This document shows positions 1 to 47,139 of a stretch of 64,000 nt of DNA, in pieces. This stretch comes from Phaeosaccion multiseriatum (lineage: Eukaryota; Protista; Ochrophyta, other classes): positions 434,001-498,000 of the forward strand of contig OZ218951.1 in NCBI GenBank assembly GCA_965112735.1, read 5' to 3'. How positions within the stretch are numbered: the stretch's first letter is position 1; each line of letters opens with the position of its first letter. Position numbers and translations under genes: made by a program. The notes beneath the pieces are model-generated. The model saw only the letters and a program-made list of their open reading frames with translations, had not been told where the DNA came from and ran no database searches.

Positions 1-3
1 GAG

Positions 4-267
4 ATGGACAGACTGCAGGCCCAAGATGGCACCACCCAAGACGATATCGATAACTTGACTCGCGTCCAAAGGAGTGTCTGGGACAAGTTCAATGCTGGGG
101 TGAAGCGTTTCTTCCAAGGGTATGAATTACTGGAAAGTTCCCCCGAGGCTTTGAGCCTCGATGACCTACTGAATCGAACACAGGATTCTGTACCGCTTCC
201 AGGAGACCCCGCCAGTCCAGGAGCCGACAGCATATTTGGTAGCGCACTGGATGACGAAAACGAGTAG
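4..267 (+). CDS. Hypothetical viral protein, probably the C-terminal part of a gene starting upstream of the window
   Basis: Open frame at the window edge, convergent with the A32 gene; no recognisable motif. Confidence 0.45.
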   Translation: MDRLQAQDGTTQDDIDNLTRVQRSVWDKFNAGVKRFFQGYELLESSPEALSLDDLLNRTQDSVPLPGDPASPGADSIFGSALDDENE

Positions 268-292
268 ATTCGGCGCGTGACCTCCTTCCCTC

Positions 293-1189
293 TCAGCTCG
301 AGGACCTCCTATTTTTCTTAACTCTCACATCAATCTTTCTCTTTGGTTTGAAGTAGTTCTCCTGTTTTGCTCGCGTCGTTTCGGGTGTAGTCCGTGCGCC
401 CCTGTTCCAGAAGTGGGGTTGGTTCATTCGAAAGTTCTTTGGAGGAGGAGCCTTGTACCAAAAGACCTGGTCTTGGAAGTTATTGGAGCGAGAAGTATTG
501 TCCACGACCAGGCAATGGTAGTCCTCAGTACACTGATCCAGTACAGCACAGAAAACTTCAAACGTCGGAAACATGCCCGCATAGTTGTCGAAAATGCGCC
601 TACGGTTGGAAAGGTTGGTTTCCCGCAGGATAAAGGTGAAGTCCACGTTCGTTCGGAGATTGGGTGGGATTCCCAATGGGTATTGCATTGTGATAATGAA
701 GAGCATTTTCATGTGCCGGCCATTCATAAAGATTGTACGGACGCTCCTCTCTTTGGTCCACGAAGCGTCGTCCAGACAATCATCGAGAACTACGACCGTT
801 CGCGGATCAATCTTTGACATGATGGGTGCATTTTTTTGCATCTGGGCTCCTTTGGGTTTGCCTTCGACCTCCTGGGCCTCTTTCTTCTGTTGCACCATCA
901 GTTTGGTAATCCTCTTCTGTCGTTTCAGCACGTCCCCCATGAGCTCTTTGCTGTATTCGTAGTGGATAAAGATGCTGGGTACAAAATCGCCGAAAAACTC
1001 GTTCACCTCTTCCGTTCCTGATATGATGGTGCTGACAGGAATGGTCTGATGGTGGGAAAGCAGGTCCTTTACCAGATAGGACTTGCCTGTCCGGCGCTTA
1101 CCAATGAACACCACGACATTGTCATCCTTGATGTTTTCCATCGAGAACTCATTGATGTTCAAAGGCACGGGTCTAGTACTACTACCCAT
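293..1189 (-). CDS. A32-like virion packaging ATPase (NCLDV core gene)
   Basis: Walker A VFIGKRRTGKS, ISGTEE, Walker B VVLDDCL, IFMNGRH and ITMQYPLGIPPNLRTNVDF, all typical of giant-virus A32 ATPases. Confidence 0.95.
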   Translation of the reverse strand: MGSSTRPVPLNINEFSMENIKDDNVVVFIGKRRTGKSYLVKDLLSHHQTIPVSTIISGTEEVNEFFGDFVPSIFIHYEYSKELMGDVLKRQKRITKLMVQQKKEAQEVEGKPKGAQMQKNAPIMSKIDPRTVVVLDDCLDDASWTKERSVRTIFMNGRHMKMLFIITMQYPLGIPPNLRTNVDFTFILRETNLSNRRRIFDNYAGMFPTFEVFCAVLDQCTEDYHCLVVDNTSRSNNFQDQVFWYKAPPPKNFRMNQPHFWNRGARTTPETTRAKQENYFKPKRKIDVRVKKNRRSSS

Positions 1190-1339
1190 GATATACCTCT
1201 CGAATTAACTACTACTTTTAGCCAACATTATAAAAAAAAAGCGTTCGGGTCGCGCATTGCGAGATGAATGAAGTTGCGTGACCTCGGTGAAGGTGTCGTG
1301 ATTGTCGGCTGAATGAACCAGAAGGTTGGGTACAGGCAA

Positions 1340-1642
1340 CTAAGCTTTCTGTGTGATTGCGACGTGTTTCTTCAGAGCTGTGTACCCTCCCAGAAAAGAT
1401 TCTCGGTGGAAAATCATCGGGAACTGAGTAGCGCCTGTCTTGGTGAGAAGATCGTCATACGCCTCGTCAAAGCCTGGATCGTCGACGTAGTTCGATACGT
1501 TCACGACGTGTACGTCAAGAATCCCTTCCCTGTCCAGAAACCTCTTGGCCTTGTCACAAAAGCTGCACCCATCGCGAGAAACGATGGTGTAGGTATGTGT
1601 GCCCAGATGCGCGAGCCACGTTGGAAAAGGCGAATTAATCAT
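1340..1642 (-). CDS. Glutaredoxin-like protein
   Basis: CSFC dithiol motif followed by TQFPMIF and FLGGY, the glutaredoxin fold signature. Confidence 0.8.
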   Translation of the reverse strand: MINSPFPTWLAHLGTHTYTIVSRDGCSFCDKAKRFLDREGILDVHVVNVSNYVDDPGFDEAYDDLLTKTGATQFPMIFHRESFLGGYTALKKHVAITQKA

Positions 1643-1717
1643 GCTGTTCGCATTGACCTGTACGCCTATAATTCATCTTCCATTTTAAACGCCTTGGTTC
1701 GCATCGATTGGTCTTTT

Positions 1718-1787
1718 TCCTTGAGCTCGCTCGTCTTCCTTGAGCTCGCTCGTCCTCCTTGAGCTCGCTCGTCTTCCTTGAGCTCGC
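1718..1787. repeat. 19-bp tandem repeat (TCCTTGAGCTCGCTCGTCY), about 3.6 copies
   Basis: Read directly; lies between the divergent glutaredoxin and thioredoxin genes. Confidence 0.85.
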
Positions 1788-1858
1788 GGCTGATCTAACT
1801 TGGTGCGCTTTTTTTTCTCGCCTATACTCAAAGCGAAGGAGCAGAGGATACATACAGG

Positions 1859-2245
1859 ATGGTAAGAGGGGCTCTATCGCTGAGCCTTTTGATGATAGGA
1901 GTGTTGCTGGCCTTGTGGCTCTTGCGCAGCAAGATGAGGTCCAAGGAGAAGTTTCAGGACCATCAGATGAAGGTCGAGTTGTTCAAAGCAGAATGGTGCA
2001 GTCATTGTGTAGCTTTGGTGCCAGAATTCGAGAAGTTCGAAAAGGAAGTGCGGGCTAAGAGTTTACCGGTAGGGGTTCACATCTACGACGAAAGTGTAGA
2101 AGAGCACGAACAGAAGTTTGTGGATAACGGTGTCCAGAGTTTCCCTTACATCCTCTTTACTGACAAGACCGGTGCCAAGGTACCATATGAAGGTCCTCGT
2201 ACTTCGGAGGGAATCATGGCGAAGCTGAATGACATTCTTGTTTGA
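1859..2245 (+). CDS. Thioredoxin/PDI-like protein with N-terminal membrane anchor
   Basis: Hydrophobic N-terminus, FKAEWCSHC, GVQSFPYI and YEGPRT. Confidence 0.85.
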   Translation: MVRGALSLSLLMIGVLLALWLLRSKMRSKEKFQDHQMKVELFKAEWCSHCVALVPEFEKFEKEVRAKSLPVGVHIYDESVEEHEQKFVDNGVQSFPYILFTDKTGAKVPYEGPRTSEGIMAKLNDILV

Positions 2246-2356
2246 GACACGAATGTCTCAGTCGCCTCCAAACGTCTACGTGTTCCGCACAATTCGTAGT
2301 GTTTCGTACCAGCAGCCACTGCGAAGTTTGGGCTACGTGCAATTCGTTGACAAGTA

Positions 2357-3451
2357 TTATTTCTGGACATACTTGAACACCTCCAAATAGTTCGCCATAA
2401 ACAGCGAGTCCTTTGTCAGAGACAAACCGAGGGACTTGTAGGTGTCGTACGCCACATCGAACTTCTCTTTGCAGGCGACGTATTCCTTGGCTCGAAAATG
2501 TAGGAGAGCCTGTAGCACGATGAAGTCGACATTCCTCTCGCGTTGCTCCCGAGAAGCCAGAAGGTCCTTTCCCATAAAGGACGATGTAGTAGTGCGTGCC
2601 CCCTCAGTCTCGCCGAGGTCTGCATCGATTGTCACGTTCTTCTCCTTCTCAGTCTTCGAGCCTCCTTGCTCGTCGCCCATTTTGATCTCGTCGTTCACCT
2701 GTTGCGGTCCTCGTGAAAGGCCGTCAATACCATCCAGGGCTGCTTTCAGCTTCTTCCATTCACTGCTGAGGATTGGGCTGTTGTCCACGTGAGTACTACT
2801 TTTCGTGAAGCCGTGCTTGGATCCCTCGAGGACGACCTCCTGCTGGGTTTGCATGGGACCGAGTGCACTTGCTTCCATCTCGATTAGATAGGAAATGTGA
2901 ATGGCTGTGTGATACAGAATGGGGATGAACTTGCTGGAGAGGTGGTGAGTGCCTTCTTGCTTGATGAGGTAAGCCCCTGTGGATAGAATGGGTAGCTTCA
3001 GATCGATGAGTACGGGGTGATTCGTGTCGGATGGAATGGGAGGACCTGGATTCGAGAGAAAGCATATGTTGGACGTCCTCTCCGCCTGGAACAGAGACAA
3101 TGTCTGAAGCAGGTCATCCCAGGAGGGAATCGAGCAGTCGTCCTCGAGAACAAGGAAGGCAGACTCTTCTGGGTACTGTTTCTTGATCCGCTGTAAGACA
3201 GAGTAGTGCTTCAGGCACTTTGATATTTCCGGAACAGCATGGTTTCGCAAAAGAGGATTGTACTTCGTGCCGACGGGATCATCATGCTTCTGCAGCGCGG
3301 TGAGCGATTTGATCTTCTGCAAGTCCAGACTGGAGGACATGTAGTCTGTGATTACGTCCACGCCGATCGCGTTCGACTGCAGAAGGTTCTGCAGCTTCTC
3401 AGTGTTCTCTTGCCTTCTCGGCAGCTTGTCTGAAAGGATGAAGGCTCGCAT
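2357..3451 (-). CDS. Glycosyltransferase family 25-like protein
   Basis: EISKCLKH...FLVLEDD and STGAYLI resemble the GT25 motifs (E-x-x-C-x-x-S/K-H, LILEDD). Confidence 0.6.
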   Translation of the reverse strand: MRAFILSDKLPRRQENTEKLQNLLQSNAIGVDVITDYMSSSLDLQKIKSLTALQKHDDPVGTKYNPLLRNHAVPEISKCLKHYSVLQRIKKQYPEESAFLVLEDDCSIPSWDDLLQTLSLFQAERTSNICFLSNPGPPIPSDTNHPVLIDLKLPILSTGAYLIKQEGTHHLSSKFIPILYHTAIHISYLIEMEASALGPMQTQQEVVLEGSKHGFTKSSTHVDNSPILSSEWKKLKAALDGIDGLSRGPQQVNDEIKMGDEQGGSKTEKEKNVTIDADLGETEGARTTTSSFMGKDLLASREQRERNVDFIVLQALLHFRAKEYVACKEKFDVAYDTYKSLGLSLTKDSLFMANYLEVFKYVQK

Positions 3452-3759
3452 GGCTCGTGAGTGGAGAGTGTTTGTGGTGCGCTTTCCTTCTTCTCCGGAC
3501 CGCTCAATCGACCTCAGTCACTTGAAAAATTATTATGGAATCGAGTGGTCGAAGCAGACAGAGAGGGGTGTTTCGATTGAAAAGAATCAGTACGGTGATG
3601 GTCTTGGAAAGGCTGGAGGACTGCCTAACAAGCAAGGTCAATTAAAAAGGAACAGGGGTGGGGAGGGAGGCGAAGGCTATCATTGCATACATCGAGCGAG
3701 GCATATTGGCATCTTTTTTTTCTCTCGACATCATAAATCGTATTCCGGCGCAGACAGTG

Positions 3760-4137
3760 ATGATATCCTTCTGCGAGTCTTGCGACAACCGCATGTATAT
3801 GTCGTTCGTGGATGGAGAGCTGTATCAGAAGTGCTTCAACTGCAACTCTGCAGTCCCACAGGAGCCTCCTCCTGGTTCCGAAGCGGGCAATGTGAGTGTG
3901 CTCGTGCACGAAACGAATTACGTAGCAAAGAAGACGGTCCACGACCTAAAGGACCTTATGAGCAAACACGTCAAGTACGACAACAAGGTCCCCCGGATCA
4001 ACACGATTCTCTGCACGAACAAGAAGTGTTCGAAGGCAGTGGGCGAGGACAACGAAGTGGTATTCATCAAGCACGATCCACAGGCGATGGGGTACGTGTA
4101 CATTTGCGTACACTGCGATCACGTGTGGGTCCTGTAG
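3760..4137 (+). CDS. DNA-directed RNA polymerase subunit RPB9/RpoM-like (viral)
   Basis: Two zinc ribbons: FCESCDNRMY...CFNC and PRINTILCTNKKC...YVYICVHCDHVW. Start set at the ATG at 3760 rather than the track's 3658. Confidence 0.85.
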   Translation: MISFCESCDNRMYMSFVDGELYQKCFNCNSAVPQEPPPGSEAGNVSVLVHETNYVAKKTVHDLKDLMSKHVKYDNKVPRINTILCTNKKCSKAVGEDNEVVFIKHDPQAMGYVYICVHCDHVWVL

Positions 4138-4231
4138 GTATGTATGTGGGTCCTGTATGTAGGGTATGTATGTGTCTATTGAGTAGCCCTTGCGACCGCG
4201 TACGGGTCCAGTAGGAGACTCGTCTCTGACC

Positions 4232-4774
4232 CTATACCTCGAGAGCTTCGATATCGAAGTAGGCAATAATCTTGTCAAGTTTCGCGTTCATCTCTTCGAC
4301 GGACGGCTTCTTCTTTTTGAGTTCACTCGGCGTGGTGCGAGACGCCGGTTTGGGGCTATTCCCTTTCCTTTGACCCTCACCCTTGCCTGCTGCACCAGCT
4401 GCGCCAGGCCTGTTGAGACCGCTCATTCCGCTCATTCCGCTCATTCCGCTCATTCCGCTCATTCCGCTCATTCCGCTCATACCACCCATCATACCGTCCA
4501 TATCGACATCCCCGTCAGCATCCACGCCAGTACCTACTTCCTCATCATCCTCGTCCTCGTCTTCGTCTTCGTCCTCGTCCTCGTCCTCGTCCTCGTCTCC
4601 ACCATCATCGTCGTCGCCCTCTTGGGGGTTTGTGTCTGAGACGTCCATATCAATCTGATCGTCTTCCTCTGAGAAGCGTTCCTTTGAGGTCGTTCCTCGG
4701 CGACGACGCATCGCAAGGAAGATACAGAGTGCAAGCACTAGAGCACTTGCCGCGAATAGAACTTTGCCTCTCAT
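4232..4774 (-). CDS. Small membrane-anchored protein with acidic tract and (MSG)n repeat
   Basis: ATG at 4774 gives MRGKVLFAASALVLALCIFLAM (TM)...KERF, then a poly-DE tract and the 9-bp repeat at about 4420-4480. Confidence 0.65.
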   Translation of the reverse strand: MRGKVLFAASALVLALCIFLAMRRRRGTTSKERFSEEDDQIDMDVSDTNPQEGDDDDGGDEDEDEDEDEDEDEDEDDEEVGTGVDADGDVDMDGMMGGMSGMSGMSGMSGMSGMSGMSGLNRPGAAGAAGKGEGQRKGNSPKPASRTTPSELKKKKPSVEEMNAKLDKIIAYFDIEALEV

Positions 4775-4798
4775 TTTAAATATGAAGTAGATTATAAA

Positions 4799-5596
4799 AT
4801 GCGTTGCCAAACCATTCAGCTTCTCGCTAAGTATGAAGACGTAATCTTCAAGTCCTTTGATTACCTGCACGTGCCCTACATTACAACAGATAAGACGAAA
4901 TGCCTGAACACGGCTTTGCTGTTCATCTTGCTCCTGACAGGGACCACTGGCTTTCAGACGGTATGCGAATGCAATGTTCACGCGATGCGCCGAAGACGAC
5001 ACACACGAAAGAACAGCATACGTATGTTTGAGGCGTTCGAAAGAGACATCGTGCAGTCGTTCGACCCTTCTGAAGCTTCTGGAGATTCTCCTTTGCTCTA
5101 CTTTGTCATGCTGACGGACGCAAACGACGTGGGCACATCAAAATACTTTCCCGGACACGTTTTCATAATCCAACGTACCGAAACGAATGAGTGGTATATT
5201 TACCAATCCTATGTCTCGAAGTACTCGTTTGACGAATACCGGAAGGAGATGGGCTTCAAAGTTACCAAAACGCGCGTGGACAACATTGTGCACGGGTTGG
5301 GAAAGTTCCTAACAGAAGATAAGACGTTGGAAGCAGCGGACCTCCAGATTCTGAAACAACTCACGAATGTATCCCATAGCCAGTACCTGGGCTTTGATAA
5401 CAAGGATCTGCAGTTCTGTTACAAAGCCGTTCCACCGGCGACCTGTCGCAAGCATCTGAACAAGTTTTGCAACGATGCGATCACGTCCTTCATAGCCAAT
5501 GACTTCATAGAGGCGTCGTTGCGCACCAACCTTGTGCAGGAGTTCAAGAAAATGAGGGATTCCATCTCAAACGAGGCCGTGAGTTGTCCGACGTGA
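4799..5596 (+). CDS. Hypothetical protein, possible papain-fold Cys-His-Gln enzyme
   Basis: Intact 265-aa ORF with motifs KCLNTA, FPGHVFII and WYIYQSY. Confidence 0.7.
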   Translation: MRCQTIQLLAKYEDVIFKSFDYLHVPYITTDKTKCLNTALLFILLLTGTTGFQTVCECNVHAMRRRRHTRKNSIRMFEAFERDIVQSFDPSEASGDSPLLYFVMLTDANDVGTSKYFPGHVFIIQRTETNEWYIYQSYVSKYSFDEYRKEMGFKVTKTRVDNIVHGLGKFLTEDKTLEAADLQILKQLTNVSHSQYLGFDNKDLQFCYKAVPPATCRKHLNKFCNDAITSFIANDFIEASLRTNLVQEFKKMRDSISNEAVSCPT

Positions 5597-5645
5597 GGAC
5601 GTACGTGTGCCATGTCTGAAGGACCCGACCCGAACAGCATTCACG

Positions 5646-6989
5646 TTACATATCAAGTGTTCGGCGATTCGCTTGGGTTTTTCGTACGCCGTTCGATGGA
5701 GGGGCATTGCCAGAAATGCTGGACGTATCCGGCAGCTCAGAAATGTTACTGTCCGTGTCGTCAGTAAGGACCGAAGCAGTGTCGAAGTTGGACTTCATGT
5801 TGAGTCGCGCCATGACATCGTCCATGTCTGAAGGACCGGACATGCTGCTACTGCTAGGTGCCGGCGCAGCGGCGGACGAGGACAGTAGTCCTTGTGGTGC
5901 GGAGGGAACGGGTGGAGAGAAGGTGCTTCGCCTTTGCTGCTGGGTTAGGTTCTCTTTGGCCTGATTGAACATTGGGGTAATGTTCGGGTTCTGCATGTTA
6001 ATGGCGGTGTTCGTAAACTCGCGCATAAGACTGGGGTTCTGCTTGAACACTGCGTTCACGTCCGGCGTCAAGTTGCCGAGCATCTGGTTGGACATGTGGA
6101 AGAAGAATGCGGACCCAGAAACACTGAGTAAGAGGTTGATCTCGGGGGCCATCTTTCCTTTGCCACTGTACTTCTCGAACAACTCCTCGAAGATGTCGTC
6201 GTACCCTTCGACCTCGTCTGTGAATGCATCGGACCACCCGTCCAGCTTGATGGAAAACGGGTCCCATCGATGGTTTGCATACTCCAACCCTGCGGCGAAA
6301 GTAGTTAGTACCTTCCTCTGGAATAGGATACCATTGTCCACCTTCTTGTCGTGGAGCATCCTGTCATAGTCGGACCTCATATCGTCTAGGTTACTGCTCG
6401 TCGTGTAGTCAGGAACATGGTACCCCTTCTTCTTGAGTCGTTCGAACTGGTACAGAAGTCGCTTCTTCTCCTTCATTCCGTCCTCGTAGGTATGGTACTG
6501 CATGTCTACTGCAGCGCTGCGATTGTACACAGCCTGCTCATGATGAACGGCTTCGTGCTCACTGTTCCCATCGCTTTCACTATCATCATCTCTGCTCATT
6601 TCAATCTCTTCGCTAGGTGTATCATCCACAGCTGCGGGAGAAGATGTGGGAGCACTTTTCTTACTCGTGACATTCTTCGTCTTTGCCTTCGAAGTTGGTT
6701 TTGTGACCGTGCTCGACTTCGAAACAGGCGTCGGACGCAGAGGAGCCGGTAGGTTCTGGTGACTGATATCGACGGACTCTATGCTGCTCGTATCACTCAT
6801 ATCCCCATCCTCCTCGCGATCATCTTGTCCAATCTGGCTCACATCAGATCCGTGTCCCGCGACTGTATTGTACACTCCGTCAAGCTCAGAAATGGTGTAA
6901 CTCTCCTCGCCCATCGTATTTTTATACATTTCCACATTAAATTTCGTGTTAACCAAACGCGACGATACAGACATGGACGTACGACGCAT
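5646..6989 (-). CDS. Conserved giant-virus protein (DUF5767-like)
   Basis: EKKRLLYQFERL...LEYANHRWDPFSIKLDGWS...YDDIFEELFEKY...MAPEINLLLSVSGSAFFFHMSN is a block I recognise from NCLDV hypothetical proteins. Start codon uncertain. Confidence 0.75.
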   Translation of the reverse strand: MRRTSMSVSSRLVNTKFNVEMYKNTMGEESYTISELDGVYNTVAGHGSDVSQIGQDDREEDGDMSDTSSIESVDISHQNLPAPLRPTPVSKSSTVTKPTSKAKTKNVTSKKSAPTSSPAAVDDTPSEEIEMSRDDDSESDGNSEHEAVHHEQAVYNRSAAVDMQYHTYEDGMKEKKRLLYQFERLKKKGYHVPDYTTSSNLDDMRSDYDRMLHDKKVDNGILFQRKVLTTFAAGLEYANHRWDPFSIKLDGWSDAFTDEVEGYDDIFEELFEKYSGKGKMAPEINLLLSVSGSAFFFHMSNQMLGNLTPDVNAVFKQNPSLMREFTNTAINMQNPNITPMFNQAKENLTQQQRRSTFSPPVPSAPQGLLSSSAAAPAPSSSSMSGPSDMDDVMARLNMKSNFDTASVLTDDTDSNISELPDTSSISGNAPPSNGVRKTQANRRTLDM

Positions 6990-7021
6990 GCCGCAGGTGC
7001 TTACGTATTCGACCGAATGCT

Positions 7022-7309
7022 TTAGATCAAGGAATGGAGTGCGAAAGGGAGAGCATAGATGGCAATCATTCCCCAGGCGAGAAGCATGCACCACTTGCCG
7101 CTTGCCCCTCCGACGAGGCAATTGACATTCAGCGTCCACGCAGAGACAATGGCCGACACCAAAAGTGCGTATATTACGAATACGCTAAGTTCTTGCCCCA
7201 GAGAAAGCTTGGGATCCTTCTCCTCCTCCGGTTGGGTAATGTACCTCACATACTGCGCGACAAAGCCAAAAGTGAGTAGGGAAATGATAATCTTCACTTC
7301 CTGTTTCAT
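7022..7309 (-). CDS. Small two/three-TM viral membrane protein
   Basis: Hydrophobic segments and an NVNCLVGG...CMLLAW motif like that of small NCLDV membrane proteins. Confidence 0.6.
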   Translation of the reverse strand: MKQEVKIIISLLTFGFVAQYVRYITQPEEEKDPKLSLGQELSVFVIYALLVSAIVSAWTLNVNCLVGGASGKWCMLLAWGMIAIYALPFALHSLI

Positions 7310-7391
7310 GGTAGTATGTGGTGTTGCGAAATGAGTAGCGATCGTACGTGTTTACACTATCGTTACATTTTTTTTCAATCCTTCGGTACTA

Positions 7392-7712
7392 CTACTCTCC
7401 TTTCTCCTTCTTCTCCATGAGAGGTACCTTTGGGGTGATGTACGTGTGCATCAGAGACTCGCCTATCTCTGCAGAGGCATTGTACTGGGTTATCTCATTC
7501 TTTTCGATCCTTTCGAGCATGTTCAGCATGCTGTCGAGCCTTTGCACGTCGAAGTTCTTTTCGCTCCGCATCGCGGACCACAAGTTGGTGAAGTCCTTCT
7601 CCATGATGGCCTTGGCTTCCGTTTGTCCTGCAAGGGCATTCATCATTAGCTGCTTGATCTCCTTCGAGTCACGATACGGCTTTGTTTGCTCTGTTTCCTC
7701 TCTCTGCTCCAT
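7392..7712 (-). CDS. Conserved giant-virus hypothetical protein
   Basis: MLERIEKNEITQYNASAEIGESLMHTYITP resembles a widespread NCLDV small-protein motif. ATG at 7712 follows an A-rich leader. Confidence 0.65.
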   Translation of the reverse strand: MEQREETEQTKPYRDSKEIKQLMMNALAGQTEAKAIMEKDFTNLWSAMRSEKNFDVQRLDSMLNMLERIEKNEITQYNASAEIGESLMHTYITPKVPLMEKKEKGE

Positions 7713-7887
7713 CTTCTTTTTTTGATACACTTTGATATATATTATCGCCTGAGCCAGACGCGAAACCCCTTTTCGATATGTATATACGATGGTGGTGCCG
7801 TTCGTTTGTGACGATCCCTCGTCAAGCGTAACGGTAAAGGAGAGCCCGAACACATATATTTCGTGTATCCGTACCTGTACTTTGGAC

Positions 7888-8878: not shown

Positions 8879-9409
8879 TTACTCCTCCTCCTCCTGTTCG
8901 ACGTCCTCCTGGTCTTCGACGTCCTCCTGGTCTTCGACGTCCTCCTGGTCTTCGACGTCCTCCTGGTCTTCGACGTCCTCCTGGTCTTCGACGTCCTCGC
9001 GGTACTGTTCGACCTCCTGATCGTCGTCATCGTCGTCCTCGTCGTCCTCGTCGTCCATTTCCCAAGTGGAAGACAGCTCTGCTTCACTTTCGCTGCTCTC
9101 CCCGTCATCTTCCTCCAATTCAGAGGACAGTAGTCCTCCCTCACTTTCGCTACTCTCCTCGCTATCTTCCTCCCAGTTGGAAGATAGTTCTGCCTCGCTA
9201 TCGCTCGTATCCTCAGCCTCTTCTGCATCCCAAGATTCACCTTCTTCTCCACCCTTTTTGCGCGATGCTGACTTTCTATTCTTCAGAATGAACTGCACAT
9301 GCGCGTCCTTGATATAGGAGTTATATGAGCGATACTGCTGACAGTACTGTACAAGGTCCTTCAGTGAGAGATTCGATAGCTCGTCACGCACAGCCTTCAC
9401 TCTAGTCAT
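8879..9409 (-). CDS. Acidic low-complexity protein with (EDVEDQ)n repeat
   Basis: 176-aa ORF; 18-bp tandem repeat at about 8895-9000 and three ESEAELSSxWE-type repeats. Confidence 0.55.
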   Translation of the reverse strand: MTRVKAVRDELSNLSLKDLVQYCQQYRSYNSYIKDAHVQFILKNRKSASRKKGGEEGESWDAEEAEDTSDSEAELSSNWEEDSEESSESEGGLLSSELEEDDGESSESEAELSSTWEMDDEDDEDDDDDDQEVEQYREDVEDQEDVEDQEDVEDQEDVEDQEDVEDQEDVEQEEEE

Positions 9410-15400: not shown

Positions 15401-17606
15401 AGTGTTTGCAGACGCCAGTGACCGCTACTGGGGGGGCATGATCGCACAGTGTAGACCCGAGAACGTGGGTCTTCCTCTTGACGAGATGGACATGGAGCCG
15501 GTCGCTTTCTGTTCAGGTGGCTTTGGGAAGCATGAGCTCAAGCGAGCAACTGTGGACAAAGAGGCAGATGCCACTTACCGGACTGTGATTCAGAATGAGT
15601 ACGCTTTGGTAGGGGCGAGGAAGGTATACATTTTCTGCGACCATCGCAATTTGGCTTTTCTCTGGTCTAACGACCCACAGTACCCGGGTCTGACCAAACC
15701 CATGCGAGAGCGGCTGCAGCGACAGGCACTTCGATTGCAGGCATTTGACTATACAATTATGCATTTGCCTGGCGACAAGCACTTGTGGGCTGACCCTCTG
15801 AGCCGTTGGCGCAAGAGGACGAGCCATGCAGCGCCTTGCGTGTTGGCTCTACGAGGCGGGAAATTCGGAGCCATGCAGGTCTTTGACATGATGGCGCCTG
15901 ACTTTCTTTGGCCCACGGAGCAGGAGATTGTCAGCGTTCAGCAGGAGGCCTTTGCAAAGCTCCTGGACGCTGGCAAAGAGGTGGGAGAGAGTGGTCGCCA
16001 ACTGCTTCTCTCACAGACTGGCGACGGCGGTCTGATTCGAGCAAAAAGTAGCACAGATGACGACGCTCAGCAGTCAAAGATTTGGATACCGCGTAAGGCA
16101 GAGGATTTGCGCCTTCGGCTCAGCGTAGTGGCCCACCAGGGGGGCATGGGCCATCGTGGGATGACCAACACGCTGGAAGCTGTAGGGAAGGACTTTGTCT
16201 GGCATGGCCAGCATGAGGATATCAAGCGCTTTGTGAACGAGTGTATTCATTGCCTTAGCAATGGCGTAGGGCTGCGCGTTCCTCGACCGCTTTTGGGTCA
16301 ATGGCATGCTACCAAGCCCCAGCAGATGATATGGTTTGACTATGTCAAGATGGGCAAGGGTATCATTTGGGTTGATGGACCTGATGGGTTCATGCAGATT
16401 CAAGTACAGTACGCGCTATGCATTTTTGATGACTTTTCGTCCTTGACAATGTACGAGCCGTGCTATGAGGCTACCGCACGAGGGTGCGCGCGGGCTTTGC
16501 TGAGATGGTTTGCTCAGCATGGCATTGTGCCTCGATGGCAGAGTGACAGAGGCAGTCATTTCCTCAATGAGGTGATGAGCGAGCTGAGAGCAATGTTGAG
16601 GTGTGATCATCATTTTGTGGTGGCACATGCGGCTTATAGCCGTGGACTTGGGGAGCGCGGAGTGCAAACGCTTCAGAAGCTTATGCAGCCGCTACTATCA
16701 GAGATGAGGGCGCTACCAGAGTCGTGGCCGCAGTTTCTGCCAGTGGTCGAGTCCATCGAGAACAGTTGCACCAAGAGCAGTCGTTCCAGCAAGTCTCCGA
16801 TTGAGCTGCATTCAGGCCATGTACCTCAGCGCCCTATCGACACGGTTATGCTTCATGATGCTGATCGAGCGCAGAAGGTGGAGTTGAAGCAACTCACCCA
16901 AGCGCAGGTCGACACGATGGCTGAGGGGCTGCAGCAAATTCGGGAGCAGTTACGTACACGGGTCGAGGAGCACCTCTCCAAGATCAGGGAGCGCAAGCGT
17001 GATGGCATCAACGCACGTCTATTGCAGGGGCGGCGTGGCGCCGAGCACAGGAAGGATCTTGATCGCGCGCGCGAGCTCGCCAGCGAGTCAATTTTCCAGC
17101 CTGGAGTATTTGTGACGGTGGCGTCAGTGGGGCCTACGAGCAAGGTCGTTGGCCGATGGCATGGTCCTTGCCGAGTGACTGAGGCTCTCGAGCACCACGT
17201 ATATCGCATTGAGGAGTTAGTGGGACAGAAGCGCACTTTGGACGTGCACATCAACCGGCTACGCTACTACTGCGACGGTGATGTCAATCTTACTACCGAC
17301 GTCCTCCACCAGATCTCACACAGCACTCAGAGTTTCGTAGTCGAGTCTTTTGAGGGGCTGGTTAGGCGTGCTGATGGCAGCTGGTTCTTAATCGTCAAGT
17401 GGAGAGGCTTCGACGCAGTCGAGAACAGCGAGGAGCCCATCGAGCAGCTTATGGCGGATACACCCCAAGCAGTGGAGCAGTATCTCGCCAAGCATCCGGA
17501 CAAACAGCGAATCAGCGCAGTCCGAGCCTACTTGCGGGCCCTCTCGGAGCGGAACGCAGAGCGGGTAGTAGCGCCCAAGCGCAAGCGTACGCGCAAGAAG
17601 CGGTAA
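12492..17606 (+). CDS. Gag-Pol polyprotein (Gag zinc knuckle, protease, RT, RNase H, integrase, chromodomain)
   Basis: CLSCGLAHTLRKC; WDSGC; YRLVCDLR/FWQ/PQG/YIDN; FADASD; H-H-CC zinc finger with D,D(SDRGSHF),E; WHGPCRV; VKWRGF...SEEP chromodomain. Domain order PR-RT-RH-IN is Ty3/gypsy. Confidence 0.96.
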   Translation: MVTPSEQDKYDTSDWRGDWPILKGQKTPIRVNTFVYGYERCAERMRLARQQARIPDMATLLDPVLRTQASVELKVQVTELNTENVKKWLKDWLKEHSESDVQGETLASIADEITIECANRENAGALKEALIYAHTEFLGMIKNSSFSSLLQTEDGTADNWWLPKDKAATKSIRFAFNSVLNRFDSNMVKLIKDAERQWQSSIDWDKNYKQWFELVIDIHMGWANARAAAARANLTAEQALPNLKKTGGGSSANSGKGGEPAWKKKKQEQAAAKNGAAASGGPVEAKPKEDVKPAGGGGAKEPRPFSGKCLSCGLAHTLRKCPTTSQDQKDRLWADYKKKHPHIKVLASAEADAGAVAEDVEGERVTVDLVANPSETVSEAARLKISAVWDSGCDVGLVISRRDADKFVALGRGGELTVIKPRSLKTGNGLVEATQVLTGAHLLFDFPWGPVSTLQMEESLRNAYVLEEIDMMCLGRPLQKAFGLSSIRAQFETMHSEEALRRERETAEKEKEAEPHSSSAGRVMSLFSSAPSEESDDLCPVEQGTGKTPIVGSVGTYHLNNEEIKQYDGVADTIQQPEDGLPPTYESLEARLGSVVDNAIAEHDFPERLKEPMLRALLKWPDVWRDELLWEDGAAKVEPMKVQFKSSEPHSQLPIKQPGPKAAFVREFTNKMVDKGFGYSNPQSVYSNRAFAVGKPGKPGKYRLVCDLRAANANTVKVDFGMTDTETISLALRGARWFIEIDGKDFFWQFPLEEWCQEHFTYITSDAKVTPTRVPQGALNSAAYVQGTMSEVFREEVGKTHAVYIDNIAYWAIEGEELVERTELTMDKLHEKNLKMGVSSFSFGSELKFVGRVHDRHGTRHDPERIQGLTDLGTPETAGDLMTFLCGIQWFNRWVKDFAQWVGPLYDLLNECLGEANAKPHQHKRSKAVAATIQLDKRWTAEHDAAFLGIKRVLAENTVRAHPDPEQVVLVFADASDRYWGGMIAQCRPENVGLPLDEMDMEPVAFCSGGFGKHELKRATVDKEADATYRTVIQNEYALVGARKVYIFCDHRNLAFLWSNDPQYPGLTKPMRERLQRQALRLQAFDYTIMHLPGDKHLWADPLSRWRKRTSHAAPCVLALRGGKFGAMQVFDMMAPDFLWPTEQEIVSVQQEAFAKLLDAGKEVGESGRQLLLSQTGDGGLIRAKSSTDDDAQQSKIWIPRKAEDLRLRLSVVAHQGGMGHRGMTNTLEAVGKDFVWHGQHEDIKRFVNECIHCLSNGVGLRVPRPLLGQWHATKPQQMIWFDYVKMGKGIIWVDGPDGFMQIQVQYALCIFDDFSSLTMYEPCYEATARGCARALLRWFAQHGIVPRWQSDRGSHFLNEVMSELRAMLRCDHHFVVAHAAYSRGLGERGVQTLQKLMQPLLSEMRALPESWPQFLPVVESIENSCTKSSRSSKSPIELHSGHVPQRPIDTVMLHDADRAQKVELKQLTQAQVDTMAEGLQQIREQLRTRVEEHLSKIRERKRDGINARLLQGRRGAEHRKDLDRARELASESIFQPGVFVTVASVGPTSKVVGRWHGPCRVTEALEHHVYRIEELVGQKRTLDVHINRLRYYCDGDVNLTTDVLHQISHSTQSFVVESFEGLVRRADGSWFLIVKWRGFDAVENSEEPIEQLMADTPQAVEQYLAKHPDKQRISAVRAYLRALSERNAERVVAPKRKRTRKKR

Positions 17607-17673
17607 GCGTTGTGTTAGGTACTGGGATAGTTTCTTTCCTCTTTTGACGGCTCGGGCTGTCGCTTGGGGGTAG

Positions 17674-17909
17674 TGTGCTATTGTCCTATAAAGTGTTGGT
17701 CATACATTCAGGGGTCACAGAAATATGAGTGTAACCTTCATGGACACCCCTGACCCAGGGGGGATAGATAGAAAGCGTGTGGAGAGCACTCTTTTTCTTG
17801 CAAGCTCTAAGTGAGTAGTAAAGACTTAATACGGACACCGACGCCCCACCAGAGGCGCGGCGAATACTTGGTCCAAACCCCTTAAGCTTTTCTACGTCAG
17901 CTTAGCACA
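17674..17909 (+). repeat. 3' LTR
   Basis: Preceded by GGGGGTAG polypurine tract; ends TAGCACA followed by the TSD ACGC. Confidence 0.95.
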
Positions 17910-18270
17910 ACGCCGCATTATATCCCAATACCGTATTGAACTGACCTTCGCTGTCAGGAGCCGCATTTTGGCCAATGATACTCGAACTGTTTTCAGTCAA
18001 ACTAATGCTTGTCAAGTCATCTGACACCAAATCACCCCACGTGTATCCGTCTGTAGTGAGACGGTTTATTTGGGAAACCTGTGTCATCTTTGTGCTACTT
18101 GAAAAGCGTCAGAGGACCTGCAAAGACCAGCGCCAGCAGGTACCTTTATTTCTACAAAGAGGATCTTTTTGTGTGGGCCTACAGCCACCCGAAGTCGTAA
18201 ATGGAACGGGTGCCGTCGGAGGAGGTGTGTCATTGCGTATCTCCTCGGCTGAAGAATACGCGCATCTCTC

Positions 18271-20406
18271 CGAGTGATTCGGGACAAACCACGACTTCGA
18301 GCGCATTTGGCCGACCATTTCGTGGAATTTACACTTCCGGTCGAAGCCATGATATGAGGCCTCGTGTACCGCTGGTCTACCGTGTTTGGCACCCTGAGAC
18401 GTAGTTTGGGATCCCTACGCCCCTGCGACGGGATGGTGGAGTGGTTCGAGTGATTCGGGACAAACCACGACTTCGAGCGCATTTGGCCGACCATTTCGTG
18501 GAATTTACACTTCCGGTCCGAGCCATGGTGTAAGGCCTCGTGTACCGCTGGTCTACCGTGTTTGGCACCCTGAGACGTAGTTTGGGATCCGTACGCCCCT
18601 GCGACGGGATGGTGGAGTGGTTCGAGTGATTCGGGACAAACCACGACTTCGAGCGCATTTTGCCGACCATTTCGTGGAATTTACACTTCCGGTCCGAGCC
18701 ATGATATGAGGCCTCGTGTACCGCTGGTCTACCGTGTTTGGCACCTCGAGACGTAGTTTGGGATCCGTACGCCCCTGCGACGGGATGGTGGAGTGGTTCG
18801 AGTGATTCGGGACAAACCACGACTTCGAGCGCATTTGGCCGACCATTTCGTGGAATTTACACTTCCGGTCCAAGCCATGATATGAGGCCGCGTGTACCGC
18901 TGGTCTACCGTGTTTGACACCTTGAGACGTAGTTTGGGATCCCTACGCTCCTGCGACGGGATGGTGGAGTGGTTCGAGTGATTCGGGACAAACCACAACT
19001 TCGAGCGCATTTGGCCGACCATTTCGTGGAATTTACACTTCCGGTCCAAGCCATGATATGAGGCCTCGTGTACCGCTGGTCTACCGTGTTTGGCACCCTG
19101 AGACGTAGTTTGGGATCCGTACGCCCCTGCGACGGGATGGTGGAGTGGTTCGAGTGATTCGGGACAAACCACGACTTCGAGCGCATTTGGCCGACCATTT
19201 CGTGGAATTTACACTTCCGGTCCGAGCCATGGTATGAGGCCTCGTGTACCGCTGGTCTACCGTGTTTGGCACCCTGAGACGTATTTTGGGATCCCTACGC
19301 TCCTGCGACGGGATGGTGGAGTGGTTCGCGTGATTCGGGACAAACCACGACTTCGAGCGCATTTGGCCGACCATTTCGTGGAATTTACACTTCCGGTCCA
19401 AGCCATGATATGAGGCCTCGTGTACCGCTGGTCTACCGTGTTTGACACCCTGAGACGTAGTTTGGGATCCCTACGCCCCTGCGACGGGATGGTGGAGTGG
19501 TTCGAGTGATTCGGGACAAACCACGACTTCGAGCGCATTTGGCCGACCATTTCGTGGAATTTACACTTCCGGTCCGAGCCATGATATGAGGCCGCGTGTA
19601 CCGCTGGTCTACCGTGTTTGGCACCCTGAGACGTAGTTTGGGATCCCTACGCCCCTGCGACGGGATGGTGGAGTGGTTCGAGTGATTCGGGACAAACCAC
19701 GACTTCGAGCGCATTTGGCCGACCATTTCGTGGAATTTACACTTCCGGTCCGAGCCATGATATGAGGCCTCGTGTACCGCTGGTCTACCGTGTTTGGCAC
19801 CTCGAGACGTATTTTGGGATCCGTACGCTCTTGCGACGGGATGGTGGAGTGGTTCGCGTGATTCGGGACAAACCACGACTTCGAGCGCATTTGGCCGACC
19901 ATTTCGTGGAATTTACACTTCCGGTCCGAGCCATGATATGAGGCCTCGTGTACCGCTGGTCTACCGTGTTTGGCACCCTGAGACGTAGTTTGGGATCCCT
20001 ACGCTCCTGCGACGAGATGGTGGAGTGGTTCGAGTGATTCGGGACAAACCACAACTTCGAGCGCATTTGGCCGACCATTTCGTGGAATTTACACTTCCGG
20101 TCCAAGCCATGATATGAGGCCTCGTGTACCGCTGGTCTACCGTGTTTGGCACCCTGAGACGTAGTTTGGGATCCGTACGCCCCTGCGACGGGATGGTGGA
20201 GTGGTTCGAGTGATTCGGGACAAACCACGACTTCGAGCGCATTTTGCCGACCATTTCGTGGAATTTACACTTCCGGTCCGAGCCATGATATGAGGCCTCG
20301 TGTACCGCTGGTCTACCGTGTTTGGCACCTCGAGACGTATTTTGGGATCCGTACGCCCCTGCGACGGGATGGTGGAGTGGTTCGCGTGATTCGGGTCAAA
20401 ACCACG
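18271..20406. repeat. Tandem array of a 176-bp unit, 12 full copies plus a partial 13th
   Basis: Units start at 18271 + 176k up to 20383 with no length variation. One GGATCC per unit; few substitutions. Confidence 0.97.
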
Positions 20407-20523
20407 GTCTCGTGCCAGCTCACAAAGTGTCCTGAGACACACTTACTCCACCAGCTTAAGGCTCTGACGTGTTACATCAGATATAATAAGAAAAAGGGGG
20501 GTATCTCAAGCCCTCGTTCCATC

Positions 20524-22071
20524 ATGGCGTTCCAAAACGTGCTCGATATGACGAAAGGATGTCTTCGTGAAAGCACGTCGAATCAAGCTAGCAGCACGAT
20601 TTTTACAGAAGACGAGCCGGTGGGAGTCCGCGAGGGTTACAGGGAGGCCCAGAGGGGTAAGAAACCTGAGGACTTCAGCGAGACCAAGGAGTCCAACGAG
20701 ACCAGCGAGACCAGCGAGTTCGAAGACACCAACGAGTCCAACGAGACCAAGGAGACCAAGGAGACCAAGGAGACCAAGGAGACCAAGGAGACCAAGGAGA
20801 CCAAGGAGTCCAACGAGACCAGCGAGTTCGAAGACACCAACGAGTTCGAAGACACCAACGAGACCAACGAGACCAGCGAGTTCGAAGACACCAACGAGAC
20901 CAAGGAGACGAACGAGACCAAGGAGTCCAACGAGTCCAACGAGACCAACGAGACCAAGGAGTCCAAGTCTTCTAATGACTCTCGAGGGTCTCCAGATTCA
21001 CGAGAGGCGCGAGAGGCAAGTGGAATCAGTTTGCAGGAAATGCTTCGCTCAATGAAGACTAGCCAGACGAGTGATAGTAGCCAAGCAAGCATAACAACAG
21101 GTAGAAAGGAATCTCCTGTCCGCCCAAGGACAAGGTCCGGGAAATTCTCGAAGGACCAAATGTTCTGCGAACCATTGAGAAGCAGTTTACTACGACAACA
21201 GGCCAATACACGTCATCTCGAGTCCTTCTGCACCGTTCGAGCTGGGTCTGAGGAGTATACATCGCCATCACCGTCTTCTCGGGCCGTGGTGAACCATGCT
21301 CTTCCTGTCCTTGATCGTAACCTGATGGAGGCTCCGGCTCCGATATGGAAATGGTCGGAAGGCATCGACTCAGCTTTCTGGCGTGCTTGCATCGGCGAAC
21401 TAGTTGCGACGATGCTTTTCCTCTTTATCTCCATCTCGAGTGTTGTGTCTGTGGTGCGCACGGAAGAGAGCTGCGACGCTTCTGCCTCCAGTCTATTGTC
21501 CATATCCCTCAGCTTTGGTTTCACCATCATGGTGTTGGTGTACGTATTTGCAAACGTTAGTGGAGCTAATATGAACCCTGCTGTATCTCTTGCTCTTGTT
21601 CTTTCGAGACGGATGAGTGCCCTGCGTGGTGTGGCGTACACGGTTGCACAGTGTGGAGGGGCAGTTGCGGGTACAGCTTTGGCGAGGGCTGTACACGAGG
21701 ATGCATTCGATTTTCTCGGGAATGGGGCCATCAATTCGATCTCAGATTCCGCCTCAACACTTTCCGCTTTTGTAGGTGAAATGCTGATGTCTTGCTTCTT
21801 ATGCGGCACTGTTCTAGTGGCAACGGACGCGTCTTTGGCGCAAAAAACCGAACATAACTTCTCGCTGCTACCTTTCTCGATCGGTATGGCGGTGTTTTTG
21901 GGGCATCAAGTGCTGATTCCCATCACAAACTGTAGCATCAACCCAGCTCGATCATTTGGTACCAGCGTTCTCGAGAATGAATGGGACGACCACTACATAT
22001 TTTGGGTGGCGCCAGTCACAGGGAGCGTATTGGCAGCCGGGCTTGTGGCCGCAACGAAGCGATACTTGTGA
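20524..22071 (+). CDS. Aquaporin (MIP family, PIP-like) with long N-terminal extension containing 9-bp (ETK/ETN/ESN) repeats
   Basis: [36 protein letters not shown]...H...[27 protein letters not shown] and [11 protein letters not shown]. Intronless; ATG at 20524. Confidence 0.93.
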
Positions 22072-22242
22072 GCCCGTCAATCGAACGTATCGCCACTAGA
22101 CAGAGTTGCTGTTCTTCCATGATTTTGATCGGGGTTCTTTTTTTTTGCATGTGAAAGGAATCAGTGGCTCGACCCAATTCCAGTCCCTCCTTCACTTAAC
22201 GAAATAAAAACGGCTGTAAGTACAGACACAAGCAAAGAGACA

Positions 22243-23217
22243 ATGGAAGGGGAAGATGCCTTGTTCGCAAAGAGTATACTGCGGGACACTATTAAAATCC
22301 ATCCTTCTGAGATGAACAAACGGAGAGACGACATTGTGCTCACCATATTGCGAGACAAGTTTGAGGGGAAGTGTTCTCACTACGGATACGTGAAGAAACA
22401 TAGCATTCAATTGATGCGTGTATCCATTGGAGTGCTGGAGTTTCCAAGCTTCCACGCCTATACTACGTACGACGTGGAGTTCACTGCAGACGTGTGCAAC
22501 TTGCTGGAAAAGACTCGCGTCTCTTGCAAGGTCTCCAAAGTGAACAGCTTTGGCATTCTTTGCTGTTTGAGCACTTCGGAGACGGAGCAAGATGTGTTTG
22601 CACAAGTCCTCCTTCCCAAGAACACCATTTTCATTCAGCATGATATCAACCTTGACAATGCAGCTGTTGGAGACACGATCATGGTCCAGATTCTGTCGAA
22701 GCAGTTCTCCCAGAACGACACCTACATCAGCGCTATTGCCACAGCTATAGATCCCAATCGCACCGAAACAGGGGTAGGAGAGCCTAGTCAAACGGGAAAC
22801 AAAGACACGAAGGCGATGGAAGAAGACGATGATGGGGGGAACACGGGTGTTCGCGATACGAATAGAACCCGGAGGAGCGAATCAGGCGACATAGGGGTTG
22901 GAGATGAGCAAGATGCGGATGTGGCGAGCAACGAAGATGCAGGCGATGCAGACGATGCAGACGATGACGTGGACGAGGATGAGGATGAGGATGAGGAAGA
23001 GGACGAGAACGAAGATGAAGACGAGGACGAGGATGAAGACGAGGACGAGGAGCCACAAGGCGACGACGAAGCTTTCAGTGAGGTAGACGATGATGACGAT
23101 GATATTGTCAATGATGATGATGATGATGATGATGATGATGTGGAATCGGAGGGTATCGTGAGTGACATGGAGGTTGATGAGGATGATGATGGTAGTGCGC
23201 TCGAGACGAAGGTATGA
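22243..23217 (+). CDS. DNA-directed RNA polymerase subunit RPB7-like (viral) with long acidic tail
   Basis: IKIHPSEM...LRDKFEGKCSHYGYV...YDVEFTADVCN...VNSFGI followed by an S1/OB-like segment and poly-D/E. Confidence 0.85.
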   Translation: MEGEDALFAKSILRDTIKIHPSEMNKRRDDIVLTILRDKFEGKCSHYGYVKKHSIQLMRVSIGVLEFPSFHAYTTYDVEFTADVCNLLEKTRVSCKVSKVNSFGILCCLSTSETEQDVFAQVLLPKNTIFIQHDINLDNAAVGDTIMVQILSKQFSQNDTYISAIATAIDPNRTETGVGEPSQTGNKDTKAMEEDDDGGNTGVRDTNRTRRSESGDIGVGDEQDADVASNEDAGDADDADDDVDEDEDEDEEEDENEDEDEDEDEDEDEEPQGDDEAFSEVDDDDDDIVNDDDDDDDDDVESEGIVSDMEVDEDDDGSALETKV

Positions 23218-23238
23218 TTGGGCACAGGGGTTTGTTGG

Positions 23239-23284
23239 CACACACACACACACACCCACACACACACACACCCACACACACACA
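23239..23284. repeat. (CA)n microsatellite inside the viral segment
   Basis: Read directly. Confidence 0.9.
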
Positions 23285-23313
23285 TCAGTGGTTTTTTTTG
23301 GCAGTAGAAGTAA

Positions 23314-23952
23314 ATGGAGCATACCTTCTCGTTACTGGAGTCATACAATAAAGAGCCGAATGGTAAGAGAAAGAGTGAGATTCTGAAAGAGCTGAACGCT
23401 CTGAAGAAAGCCAACCTCGCCAAAGACAACCTTCTGTATGCCTTCAATCAGGAGAGCGTAAAGCTTCGGCTCGCGTACAGCTCGATTGGATCCAGTCCAG
23501 AGGTGTTTAGTTTGACACAGAATCAGCGATTGCTGAAGTACCTCTTCAGCATGGAGACACCGAACACCGCGCTCGTTCTCTTCCATGGCACAGGGTCGGG
23601 AAAAAGTTGCACCAGTCTCCAAATCGCCGAGAACTTCAAACACAAGTATAAGAAGAAAGCCCTCATTCTGGCACAGTCAGGAATCCAAGACCAGTTTCGC
23701 CGCGAAATCTCCAGTGTTGCCAAAATTGCGAACGAGGAGTCTTTCACGCAGCAGTGCCTATCAAATGCCTACGTCCCTAGAACCCAAAGAAAGAGCGATC
23801 CGCGATCAGTTCAGCGATCTGTCAATCGCCTCGTGAACAAGGACTTTGAGTTCCAGAGTCATGCAAAAATGTCGAACGAGGTGCGTGCTGCTCGAGAGAC
23901 GCTCAACCCGAAAGATTTCCGACGCTGGGTGGGAAAGAAGTATTCAAGATAG
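23314..23952 (+). pseudogene. D6/D11-like (VETF-S/NPH-I type) SF2 helicase, N-terminal fragment truncated at the virus/host junction
   Basis: Q motif (LTQNQRLL) and LVLFHGTGSGKSCTSLQIAE; ends at KKYS just before the expected DExH Walker B. Confidence 0.85.
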
Positions 23953-23958
23953 GATTGT

Positions 23959-39103: not shown

Positions 39104-47139
<8,036 letters not shown>

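Follow-up and report, generated by a model that had tools for sequence, protein, structure and literature searches.

A probable recent and already damaged giant-virus insertion of the Imitervirales type in a nuclear chromosome of a flagellated eukaryote

How does a block of giant-virus genes come to lie directly beside spliced eukaryotic genes, and in what state has it survived there? This question is raised by a stretch of 64,000 nucleotides from Phaeosaccion multiseriatum (GenBank assembly GCA_965112735.1, contig OZ218951.1, positions 434,001 to 498,000; hereafter the window), in which the left 24 kb carries homologues of genes from nucleocytoplasmic large DNA viruses (NCLDVs) and the right part carries intron-containing host genes. 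Based on our analysis, the left part is very probably a giant endogenous viral element (GEVE) that arrived recently and is already damaged, consisting of Imitervirales-type DNA in a nuclear chromosome of an intron-rich, flagellated eukaryote, with the window holding the right-hand 24 kb of the element. An initial annotation had described the same region as a largely intact and young, possibly latent integration of an undescribed giant virus related to Imitervirales.

The window consists of two compositional halves. GC content is about 0.50 over positions 1-23000 and 0.57-0.62 from about 24000 onward, with means of 0.50 on the viral side and 0.59 on the host side, and the shift is confined to about 200 nt near position 23950 (23800-24100 at 200-nt resolution). 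The ratio of observed to expected CpG (CpG o/e) is about 1.0 on the viral side and 0.68 on the host side. Long open reading frames (ORFs) on both strands fill the left half, while the right half contains short ORFs and many microsatellites, its only long coding stretches being exons of a nonribosomal peptide synthetase (NRPS) and a polyketide synthase (PKS). Using GC content, CpG o/e, coding density, NCLDV homologues and synteny, we delimited the giant-virus-derived segment to positions 1-23952, and it extends past the left edge of the window. Viral DNA proper makes up 16.0 kb of the left 24 kb, is 90% coding and shows no introns; the remainder consists of a 5.8-kb long terminal repeat (LTR) retrotransposon and a 2.1-kb satellite of 176-nt repeats.

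To compare the viral genes with those of known relatives, we searched by tblastn an NCLDV comparison set of 187 IMG/VR giant-virus loci (2.5 Mb) located around relatives of A32, DUF5767 and RPB9. The A32-like packaging ATPase (293-1189, minus strand) is full length, as judged by protein identity to NCLDV A32. It shares 50-58% identity over 85-97% of its length with thousands of NCLDV proteins, reaches a maximum of 58% identity among 5.8 billion proteins, and has matches in 82 IMG/VR loci; a scan of IMG/VR with this single protein returned nothing close. The DUF5767 protein (5646-7139, minus strand; 5646-6989 when counted from the first ATG) was identified by Pfam PF19071 (E 4e-29) and has 144 relatives at 34-53% identity, among them one from Dishui Lake large algae virus 1 and another encoded on an NCLDV contig of 402 kb that has typical giant-virus genes.

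Two RNA polymerase subunits were also recognized. The RPB9-like subunit (3760-4137, plus strand) has 125 aa and two zinc ribbons; its alignment with four giant-virus homologues contains eight invariant Cys residues, the alignment profile matches solved RPB9 chains over the full length (best E 8e-13), and homologues occur in 28 NCLDV loci. Its homology surfaced by tblastx in a frame other than that of the longest ORF at the site (3348-4214, 288 aa), which we rejected as spurious because of its noise-like translation and a GC content at third codon positions (GC3) of 0.39 vs about 0.61 elsewhere. A pseudogene suspected at 3452-4231 from codon-position GC likewise turned out to be the intact RPB9 gene in another frame. 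The RPB7-like subunit (22243-23217, plus strand), which carries an acidic C-terminal tail, was assigned from a Pfam match to SHS2_Rpb7-N (26.9 bits, cutoff 24.8) and from 33% identity over 160 aa to an ORF that adjoins a helicase gene in locus L081. A two-sequence profile built with a giant-virus homologue matches solved RPB7 at positions 13-165 (E 1e-4); the single sequence gave no match against solved structures, and an AlphaFold2 model made without an alignment (pLDDT 33) was not used.

The neighbouring genes point in the same direction. A thioredoxin gene (1859-2245, plus strand; Pfam PF00085, E 7e-11) has homologues in 19 NCLDV loci and adjoins A32 in one of them (L041), and a patatin-like phospholipase gene (7789-8760, plus strand; Pfam PF01734, E 3.5e-19) has homologues in 35 NCLDV loci, close to DUF5767. 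An ORF of 265 aa with no assigned function (4799-5596, plus strand) is conserved in eight NCLDV loci, where it lies 2-3 kb from the DUF5767 gene (best E 1e-19). In the giant-virus genome GVMAG-S-ERX556063-48, a stretch of no more than 10 kb holds A32, an ORF with a thioredoxin domain, RPB9, patatin and DUF5767; this is the gene set of positions 293-8760 of the window, locally rearranged. At the other end of the viral segment, RPB7 adjoins a helicase gene as it does in L081.

The order to which the virus belonged was examined with the classification of its relatives in the supplement of Aylward et al. 2021 (PMC8575486). GVMAG-S-ERX556063-48, which holds the syntenic block, and GVMAG-S-ERX555907-94, which holds the best RPB9 match, are both assigned to IM_09. 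Three genomes belong to IM_12, namely GVMAG-M-3300010354-11 (matched by DUF5767, patatin and the C-terminus of a fibre-like protein described below), GVMAG-S-3300012000-62 and GVMAG-M-3300021962-46 (both matched by DUF5767), while a further DUF5767 relative, GVMAG-M-3300021958-1, belongs to IM_08 and three A32 relatives belong to IM_01. Every classified relative is thus a member of Imitervirales. By itself, DUF5767 is no proof of the order, since the phycodnavirus CpV-BQ1, which lacks RNA polymerase, has it too (PMC12085832). RNA polymerase subunits of their own are absent from many Algavirales, CpV-BQ1 among them (PMC12085832), and the presence of both RPB7 and RPB9 in the window fits Imitervirales. 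Assignment to this order is therefore well supported as a prediction from gene content and homology.

Within the order, no close relative was encountered. The free viruses GVMAG-S-ERX556063-48, GVMAG-S-ERX555907-94 and GVMAG-M-3300010354-11 share the neighbourhood of A32, thioredoxin, RPB9, patatin and DUF5767 with the window, with homologues at 25-56% identity. They differ from it in local gene order and in GC content (27-34% vs 50%), and they contain neither the retrotransposon nor the satellite nor the host flank that are present in the window. Among the relatives, median GC is 29% vs 50% in the viral part of the window, although a GC content in the middle range is not unique, as some loci lie at 45-64% and one IM_01 genome at 50.6%. 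These low identities suggest a lineage without a close sequenced relative, which would represent at least a different genus.

Several statements of the initial annotation can be revisited at this point. The hallmarks that it had named, A32, RPB7, RPB9 and DUF5767, were all verified by identity, Pfam matches and profiles. Its proposal of an Imitervirales virus agrees with the classification of the syntenic and best-matching genomes (IM_09, IM_12, IM_08 and IM_01), and its description of the virus as undescribed is upheld by the low maximum identity of A32 and by the position of this protein outside its 82 relatives, which is discussed below. Its account of about 24 kb of intronless, packed viral ORFs was correct with respect to density and the lack of introns and overstated with respect to extent: only 16.0 kb is viral proper, the rest being the retrotransposon and the satellite, the latter of which it had left unmentioned.

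Strong support for integration, independent of the junction with host DNA, comes from the retrotransposon nested in the viral segment. A gene for a fibre-like repeat protein (9472-18087, minus strand) is broken by this one insertion; it was recognized from its C-terminal homology and from a minus-strand frame that is open up to the element on both sides, leaving an 882-aa piece and a 61-aa piece with an ATG. The two pieces contain similar short Gly/Ala/Asn-rich repeats, and their mutual similarity is not significant; we take them for the two parts of a single fibre-like viral gene that the retrotransposon has split. The C-terminal 195 aa share 42% identity with an ORF of GVMAG-M-3300010354-11, and homologues occur in two NCLDV loci. 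The gene also contains an internal 348-nt repeat in three copies, and comparison of the protein with solved structures yielded no relative.

The retrotransposon itself is complete. It spans 5.8 kb, has TG..CA ends, is flanked by a 4-bp target duplication and carries 236-nt LTRs with one mismatch between them. Its polyprotein ORF of 1704 aa (12492-17606, plus strand) contains the Pfam domains of a Ty3/gypsy-type element, in the order RVT_1 (residues 695-837), RNase H (939-1085), Integrase_H2C2 (1206-1256) and rve (1306-1375); a Pfam Chromo match at 1634-1665 is weak (18.5 bits vs a cutoff of 25.1). Because the LTRs differ at only 1 of 236 bases, the insertion is very recent, and with its gag-pol ORF uninterrupted the element looks fully intact and its family is probably active. 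Because an LTR element with its target duplication splits a viral gene, the viral DNA has resided in a nucleus with active retrotransposons. A (CA)23 tract at 23239-23284, located between the viral RPB7 and helicase genes, was counted as further support for nuclear residence, as host introns hold the same repeat type and four (CA) arrays of at least eight units lie on the host side.

On its right, the viral segment has a boundary that was resolved to a short interval. The last viral gene encodes a superfamily 2 (SF2) helicase of the ResIII/DEAD type (23314-23952, plus strand), which is broken by one truncation and retains its N-terminal 212 aa only. A HMMER search found 1351 relatives of this fragment, located on NCLDV contigs; most of the best ones have 1000-1300 aa, are matched mostly around residues 90-260 and combine DEAD/ResIII with Helicase_C. 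With 212 of about 1150 aa, about one fifth of the protein is left. The helicase ORF ends at 23952 and similarity to NRPS begins at 23969, so that the junction falls in a G-rich interval of 16 nt (23953-23968), within which both the viral helicase gene and the host NRPS gene are cut and across which GC content changes from 0.50 to 0.62. As the right end cuts a helicase gene on one side and an NRPS exon on the other, it is a breakpoint and not the terminus of a viral genome. A splice acceptor at the junction that might have rescued the NRPS exon was ruled out, the upstream sequence being G-rich and without a pyrimidine tract.

On the host side of the junction lies an NRPS gene with its 5' part missing (23969-29402, plus strand), identified by the Pfam domains Condensation, AMP-binding, AMP-binding_C, PP-binding and Hexapep. 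It begins with half a condensation domain (the match spans profile positions 227-452 only), followed by the adenylation and carrier domains and then by an 876-aa ORF with hexapeptide repeats. The only matches obtained were bacterial NRPSs at 35-39% identity. Within the adenylation domain lies a GT-AG intron of 185 nt, exactly at the place where a bacterial relative (P0241) is continuous, and because of this intron the gene is eukaryotic and not bacterial contamination. Further downstream, MCM6 is represented by its 3' exons (43295-46701, plus strand), with the MCM P-loop, MCM lid and MCM6_C on separate ORFs; at least four exons are separated by GT-AG introns of about 200 nt that are rich in (GT)n. 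A TMEM107 exon (37852-38145, minus strand; Pfam PF14995, E 2e-15, profile positions 48-122 of 123) indicates a ciliated or flagellated host.

How damaged and how old is the viral part? We counted 17 viral genes, two of which are broken, the fibre-like gene by insertion and the helicase gene by truncation at the junction. Eight genes had relatives or domain models against which they could be checked, and these showed neither in-frame stops nor frameshifts (A32, thioredoxin, RPB9, ORF 4799-5596, DUF5767, patatin, RPB7 and the aquaporin domain). A recent arrival is suggested because composition is unchanged, CpG o/e is near 1 vs 0.68 in the host flank, coding density is high and frames are intact, and a young integration is accordingly plausible.

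These results bear on the remaining statements of the initial annotation. The contiguity of the viral block with spliced host genes holds in this sequence, as seen in MCM6, TMEM107 and the NRPS intron, and the flagellated host is supported by the ciliary gene TMEM107. Youth is plausible from GC content (0.50 vs 0.59), CpG o/e and intact ORFs. Apart from the transposable element and the junction, no stops or frameshifts had been seen; we could substantiate this for the eight comparable genes, and the five ORFs that lack relatives do not permit such a judgement. As far as the window shows, however, neither a largely intact nor a possibly latent element is supported: the helicase is truncated, a second gene is split by the retrotransposon, and the right end is a breakpoint without a terminal repeat inside a helicase and an NRPS condensation domain. 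A broken end and 16 kb of viral DNA are too little to carry either term.

Several observations weigh against a recent, damaged GEVE and have to be set beside the evidence in its favour. Within the window, the major capsid protein (MCP), DNA polymerase B (PolB), VLTF3 and the large RNA polymerase subunits are absent. A search for inverted and direct repeats at 23900-24000 revealed neither a terminal repeat nor a target duplication at the junction. The window contains no second copy and no solo LTR of the retrotransposon, and no further copy of the satellite, so that neither is represented on the host side. Five viral ORFs have no detectable relatives, so their intactness cannot be judged, although they keep the viral pattern of codon-position GC. 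In a neighbour-joining tree of A32 (83 sequences, the window and 82 relatives), the window forms a long branch outside all others, with a median distance of 0.405 to the relatives vs 0.289 among the relatives themselves, and this long branch gives no firm family-level placement. Finally, the join at 23953-23968 is known from the assembled sequence alone, so a misjoin is possible.

That last point is the core of one rival explanation, an assembly chimera in which a giant virus, living free or in co-culture, contributed a contig that was misjoined to a host contig near 23950. It would account for the abruptness of the composition step, for two genes being cut at the join without a target duplication or terminal repeat, and for the lack of any repeat family common to both sides. 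However, the retrotransposon inside a viral gene, flanked by a target duplication and bounded by near-identical LTRs, requires nuclear residence, the viral part contains a (CA)23 tract of the host-intron type, and the join contains no repeat that could mislead an assembler. We therefore regard a chimera as very unlikely. The opposite view, that the insertion is an ancient relic whose surviving genes were kept by chance or by host use, would explain the truncated end, the retrotransposon invasion and the satellite expansion, which resemble the erosion described for GEVEs of Euglena (10.1101/2025.04.23.650285). Nevertheless, GC content has not drifted toward that of the host, CpG has not been lost, open reading frames still make up 90% of the DNA, the checked genes contain no stops or frameshifts, and the retrotransposon insertion is itself very recent (1 mismatch in a 236-nt LTR). 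An old relic is thus unlikely.

Could the element instead be a complete latent giant virus that is potentially still active? In Chlamydomonas reinhardtii CC-2937, a latent GEVE of 617 kb, the only latent giant virus documented in an alga, has 10-15 kb terminal inverted repeats and a 6-bp target duplication and occupies an intergenic repeat site (10.1101/2024.09.03.611062). The viral ORFs of the window are intact and their density and composition are virus-like, and the Chlamydomonas element, which likewise contains a single Gypsy LTR retrotransposon as well as satellite arrays, still makes particles (10.1101/2024.09.03.611062). In contrast to that element with its bounding repeats and duplication, the segment studied here ends inside a helicase gene that lacks about four fifths of its length, its fibre-like gene is split, and the rest of the element lies outside the window. 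Because the end cuts the helicase, a complete latent virus is possible only if the remaining element compensates for the truncated gene, and we consider this explanation highly improbable. A related and rather improbable reading is that behind the visible edge lies the otherwise complete genome of an undescribed Imitervirales lineage of mid GC, recently integrated and possibly of family rank, with this flagellate as its natural host; if true, it would tie an uncultured clade directly to its host and might add a second case of latency in giant viruses. The copy seen here is most likely viral DNA that is inert, and not a complete virus in a latent state.

A recent, damaged GEVE could have formed in a few steps. 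A viral genome or a fragment of one may have been inserted into the NRPS gene by an illegitimate, end-joining type of event; alternatively, the end may not be original, and a later deletion may have trimmed viral and host DNA together. Entry would have been recent, with composition and reading frames not yet decayed, and after its arrival the viral DNA would have taken up a host-type LTR retrotransposon. If the insertion into the NRPS gene was a simple one, the missing 5' part of this gene is expected beyond the far side of the viral block.

Comparison with known elements places the segment among several kinds of GEVE. Those of green algae, which belong to IM_12 of Imitervirales (PMC9693826), are similar in that Imitervirales DNA is contiguous with an intron-rich host, GC content lies above that of free relatives, and transposable elements and repeats occur at or in the element. 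Moreover, IM_12 genomes are the best match for some genes of the window (the fibre-like C-terminus at 42%, DUF5767 and patatin). In contrast, green-algal GEVEs have a GC content near that of the host (58-65%) and spliceosomal introns, whereas here GC lies 9 points below the host and no intron was seen, and for the syntenic block and RPB9 the match is with IM_09, not with the green-algal IM_12. The Chlamydomonas CC-2937 element shares with the window its integrated state, mostly intact genes, a single nested Gypsy-type LTR retrotransposon and satellite arrays; unlike it, the segment in the window ends inside a viral gene and a host coding exon and has no terminal repeat. The GEVEs of Euglena gracilis (10.1101/2025.04.23.650285) are likewise giant-virus insertions in a flagellate that transposable elements have invaded. 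They differ in being described as eroded and duplicated, while in the visible part of the present element 2 of 17 genes are broken.

Green algae, brown algae and Euglena are among the organisms from which such elements are already known, and the general picture is unchanged by this one. What it adds is an unsampled Imitervirales lineage, a boundary placed at base level within an exon of the host, and a view of decay at a very early stage. Few approaches other than integrated viral DNA can link uncultured giant-virus lineages to hosts, and this segment ties an Imitervirales lineage without a close relative to a specific flagellated eukaryote rich in PKS and NRPS genes. A boundary that can be seen base by base within a coding exon bears on how such DNA enters chromosomes, and the combination of mostly intact genes, unchanged composition and a very young nested retrotransposon offers a useful time-point for estimating the rate of decay.

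Besides the genes discussed above, the viral segment contains an aquaporin gene (20290-22071, plus strand; Pfam PF00230, E 7e-56), which encodes a complete MIP domain (residues 361-583) behind a long repetitive N-terminal extension. The nearest solved structures are plant PIP2 aquaporins (E 2.5e-48), and a single-protein scan of IMG/VR found no relative. GC3 and CpG of this gene match the viral genes and not the host, viral genes flank it on both sides, and an aquaporin is known from a Mesomimiviridae genome (PMC12338748); we take it as a putative cellular gene carried by the virus. Next to it, a tandem-repeat search identified the satellite (18271-20406), which consists of 12 copies of a 176-nt unit that are 96-98% alike. 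It sits between two viral genes, has a CpG o/e of 1.21 and contains no coherent reading frame, 176 not being a multiple of 3. The array may have been part of the incoming virus or may have expanded after integration, and its last, degenerate unit contains the first ATG of the aquaporin ORF.

The other viral ORFs are less informative. At the left edge of the window, a small and maybe incomplete ORF (4-267, plus strand) was retained for its viral-like codon-position GC and had zero matches across the 2.5 Mb of NCLDV DNA. An ORF of 149 aa (1313-1762, plus strand) and one of 364 aa (2357-3451, minus strand) also show codon-position GC of the viral type, and neither has a Pfam match or an NCLDV match in the same 2.5 Mb. 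Single weak NCLDV matches were obtained for a small ORF of 95 aa (7022-7309, minus strand; locus L083, E 0.001) and for an ORF of 177 aa (7392-7925, minus strand; locus L162, E 1e-4). Two further ORFs were recognized from the ORF map and tandem repeats, an acidic low-complexity ORF (4232-4774, minus strand), whose Pfam matches are all below threshold, and an acidic ORF composed of 18-nt repeats (8879-9409, minus strand).

Some additional observations concern the viral segment. A run of eight or nine T followed by AGTAG within 30 nt lies upstream of A32 (1209-1240, minus strand) and upstream of the helicase gene (23292-23307, plus strand), with five overlapping matches at these two sites vs 0.2 expected in the window; T-runs also occur upstream of the thioredoxin and patatin genes. 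The signal may be a viral promoter or terminator, with too few cases to tell, and as a shared upstream motif it was rejected because it is present at two genes only. In GVMAG-M-3300010354-11 (locus L090, 16412-18547), the homologue of the fibre-like gene adjoins a 711-aa ORF that contains DUF2345 and DUF3540, two domains known elsewhere from proteins of bacteria; this neighbourhood hints at a pair of spike and fibre genes in these viruses. The (CA)23 tract near the helicase gene is of a kind unusual for giant-virus DNA.

On the host side, the remaining NRPS exons stay open, with a clean intron, despite the missing upstream part. A modular PKS gene (59620-64000, plus strand), whose order of ketosynthase (KS), carrier and KS domains was recognized from Pfam ketoacyl-synt, Ketoacyl-synt_C and PP-binding on several ORFs, extends past the right edge of the window. 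Searches for tRNA genes and Rfam families returned none in the window. Two host-side microsatellites are very long, namely (CCT) in 151 units at 30118-30571 and (CACT) in 87 units at 62361-62706, the latter within the region of the PKS gene.

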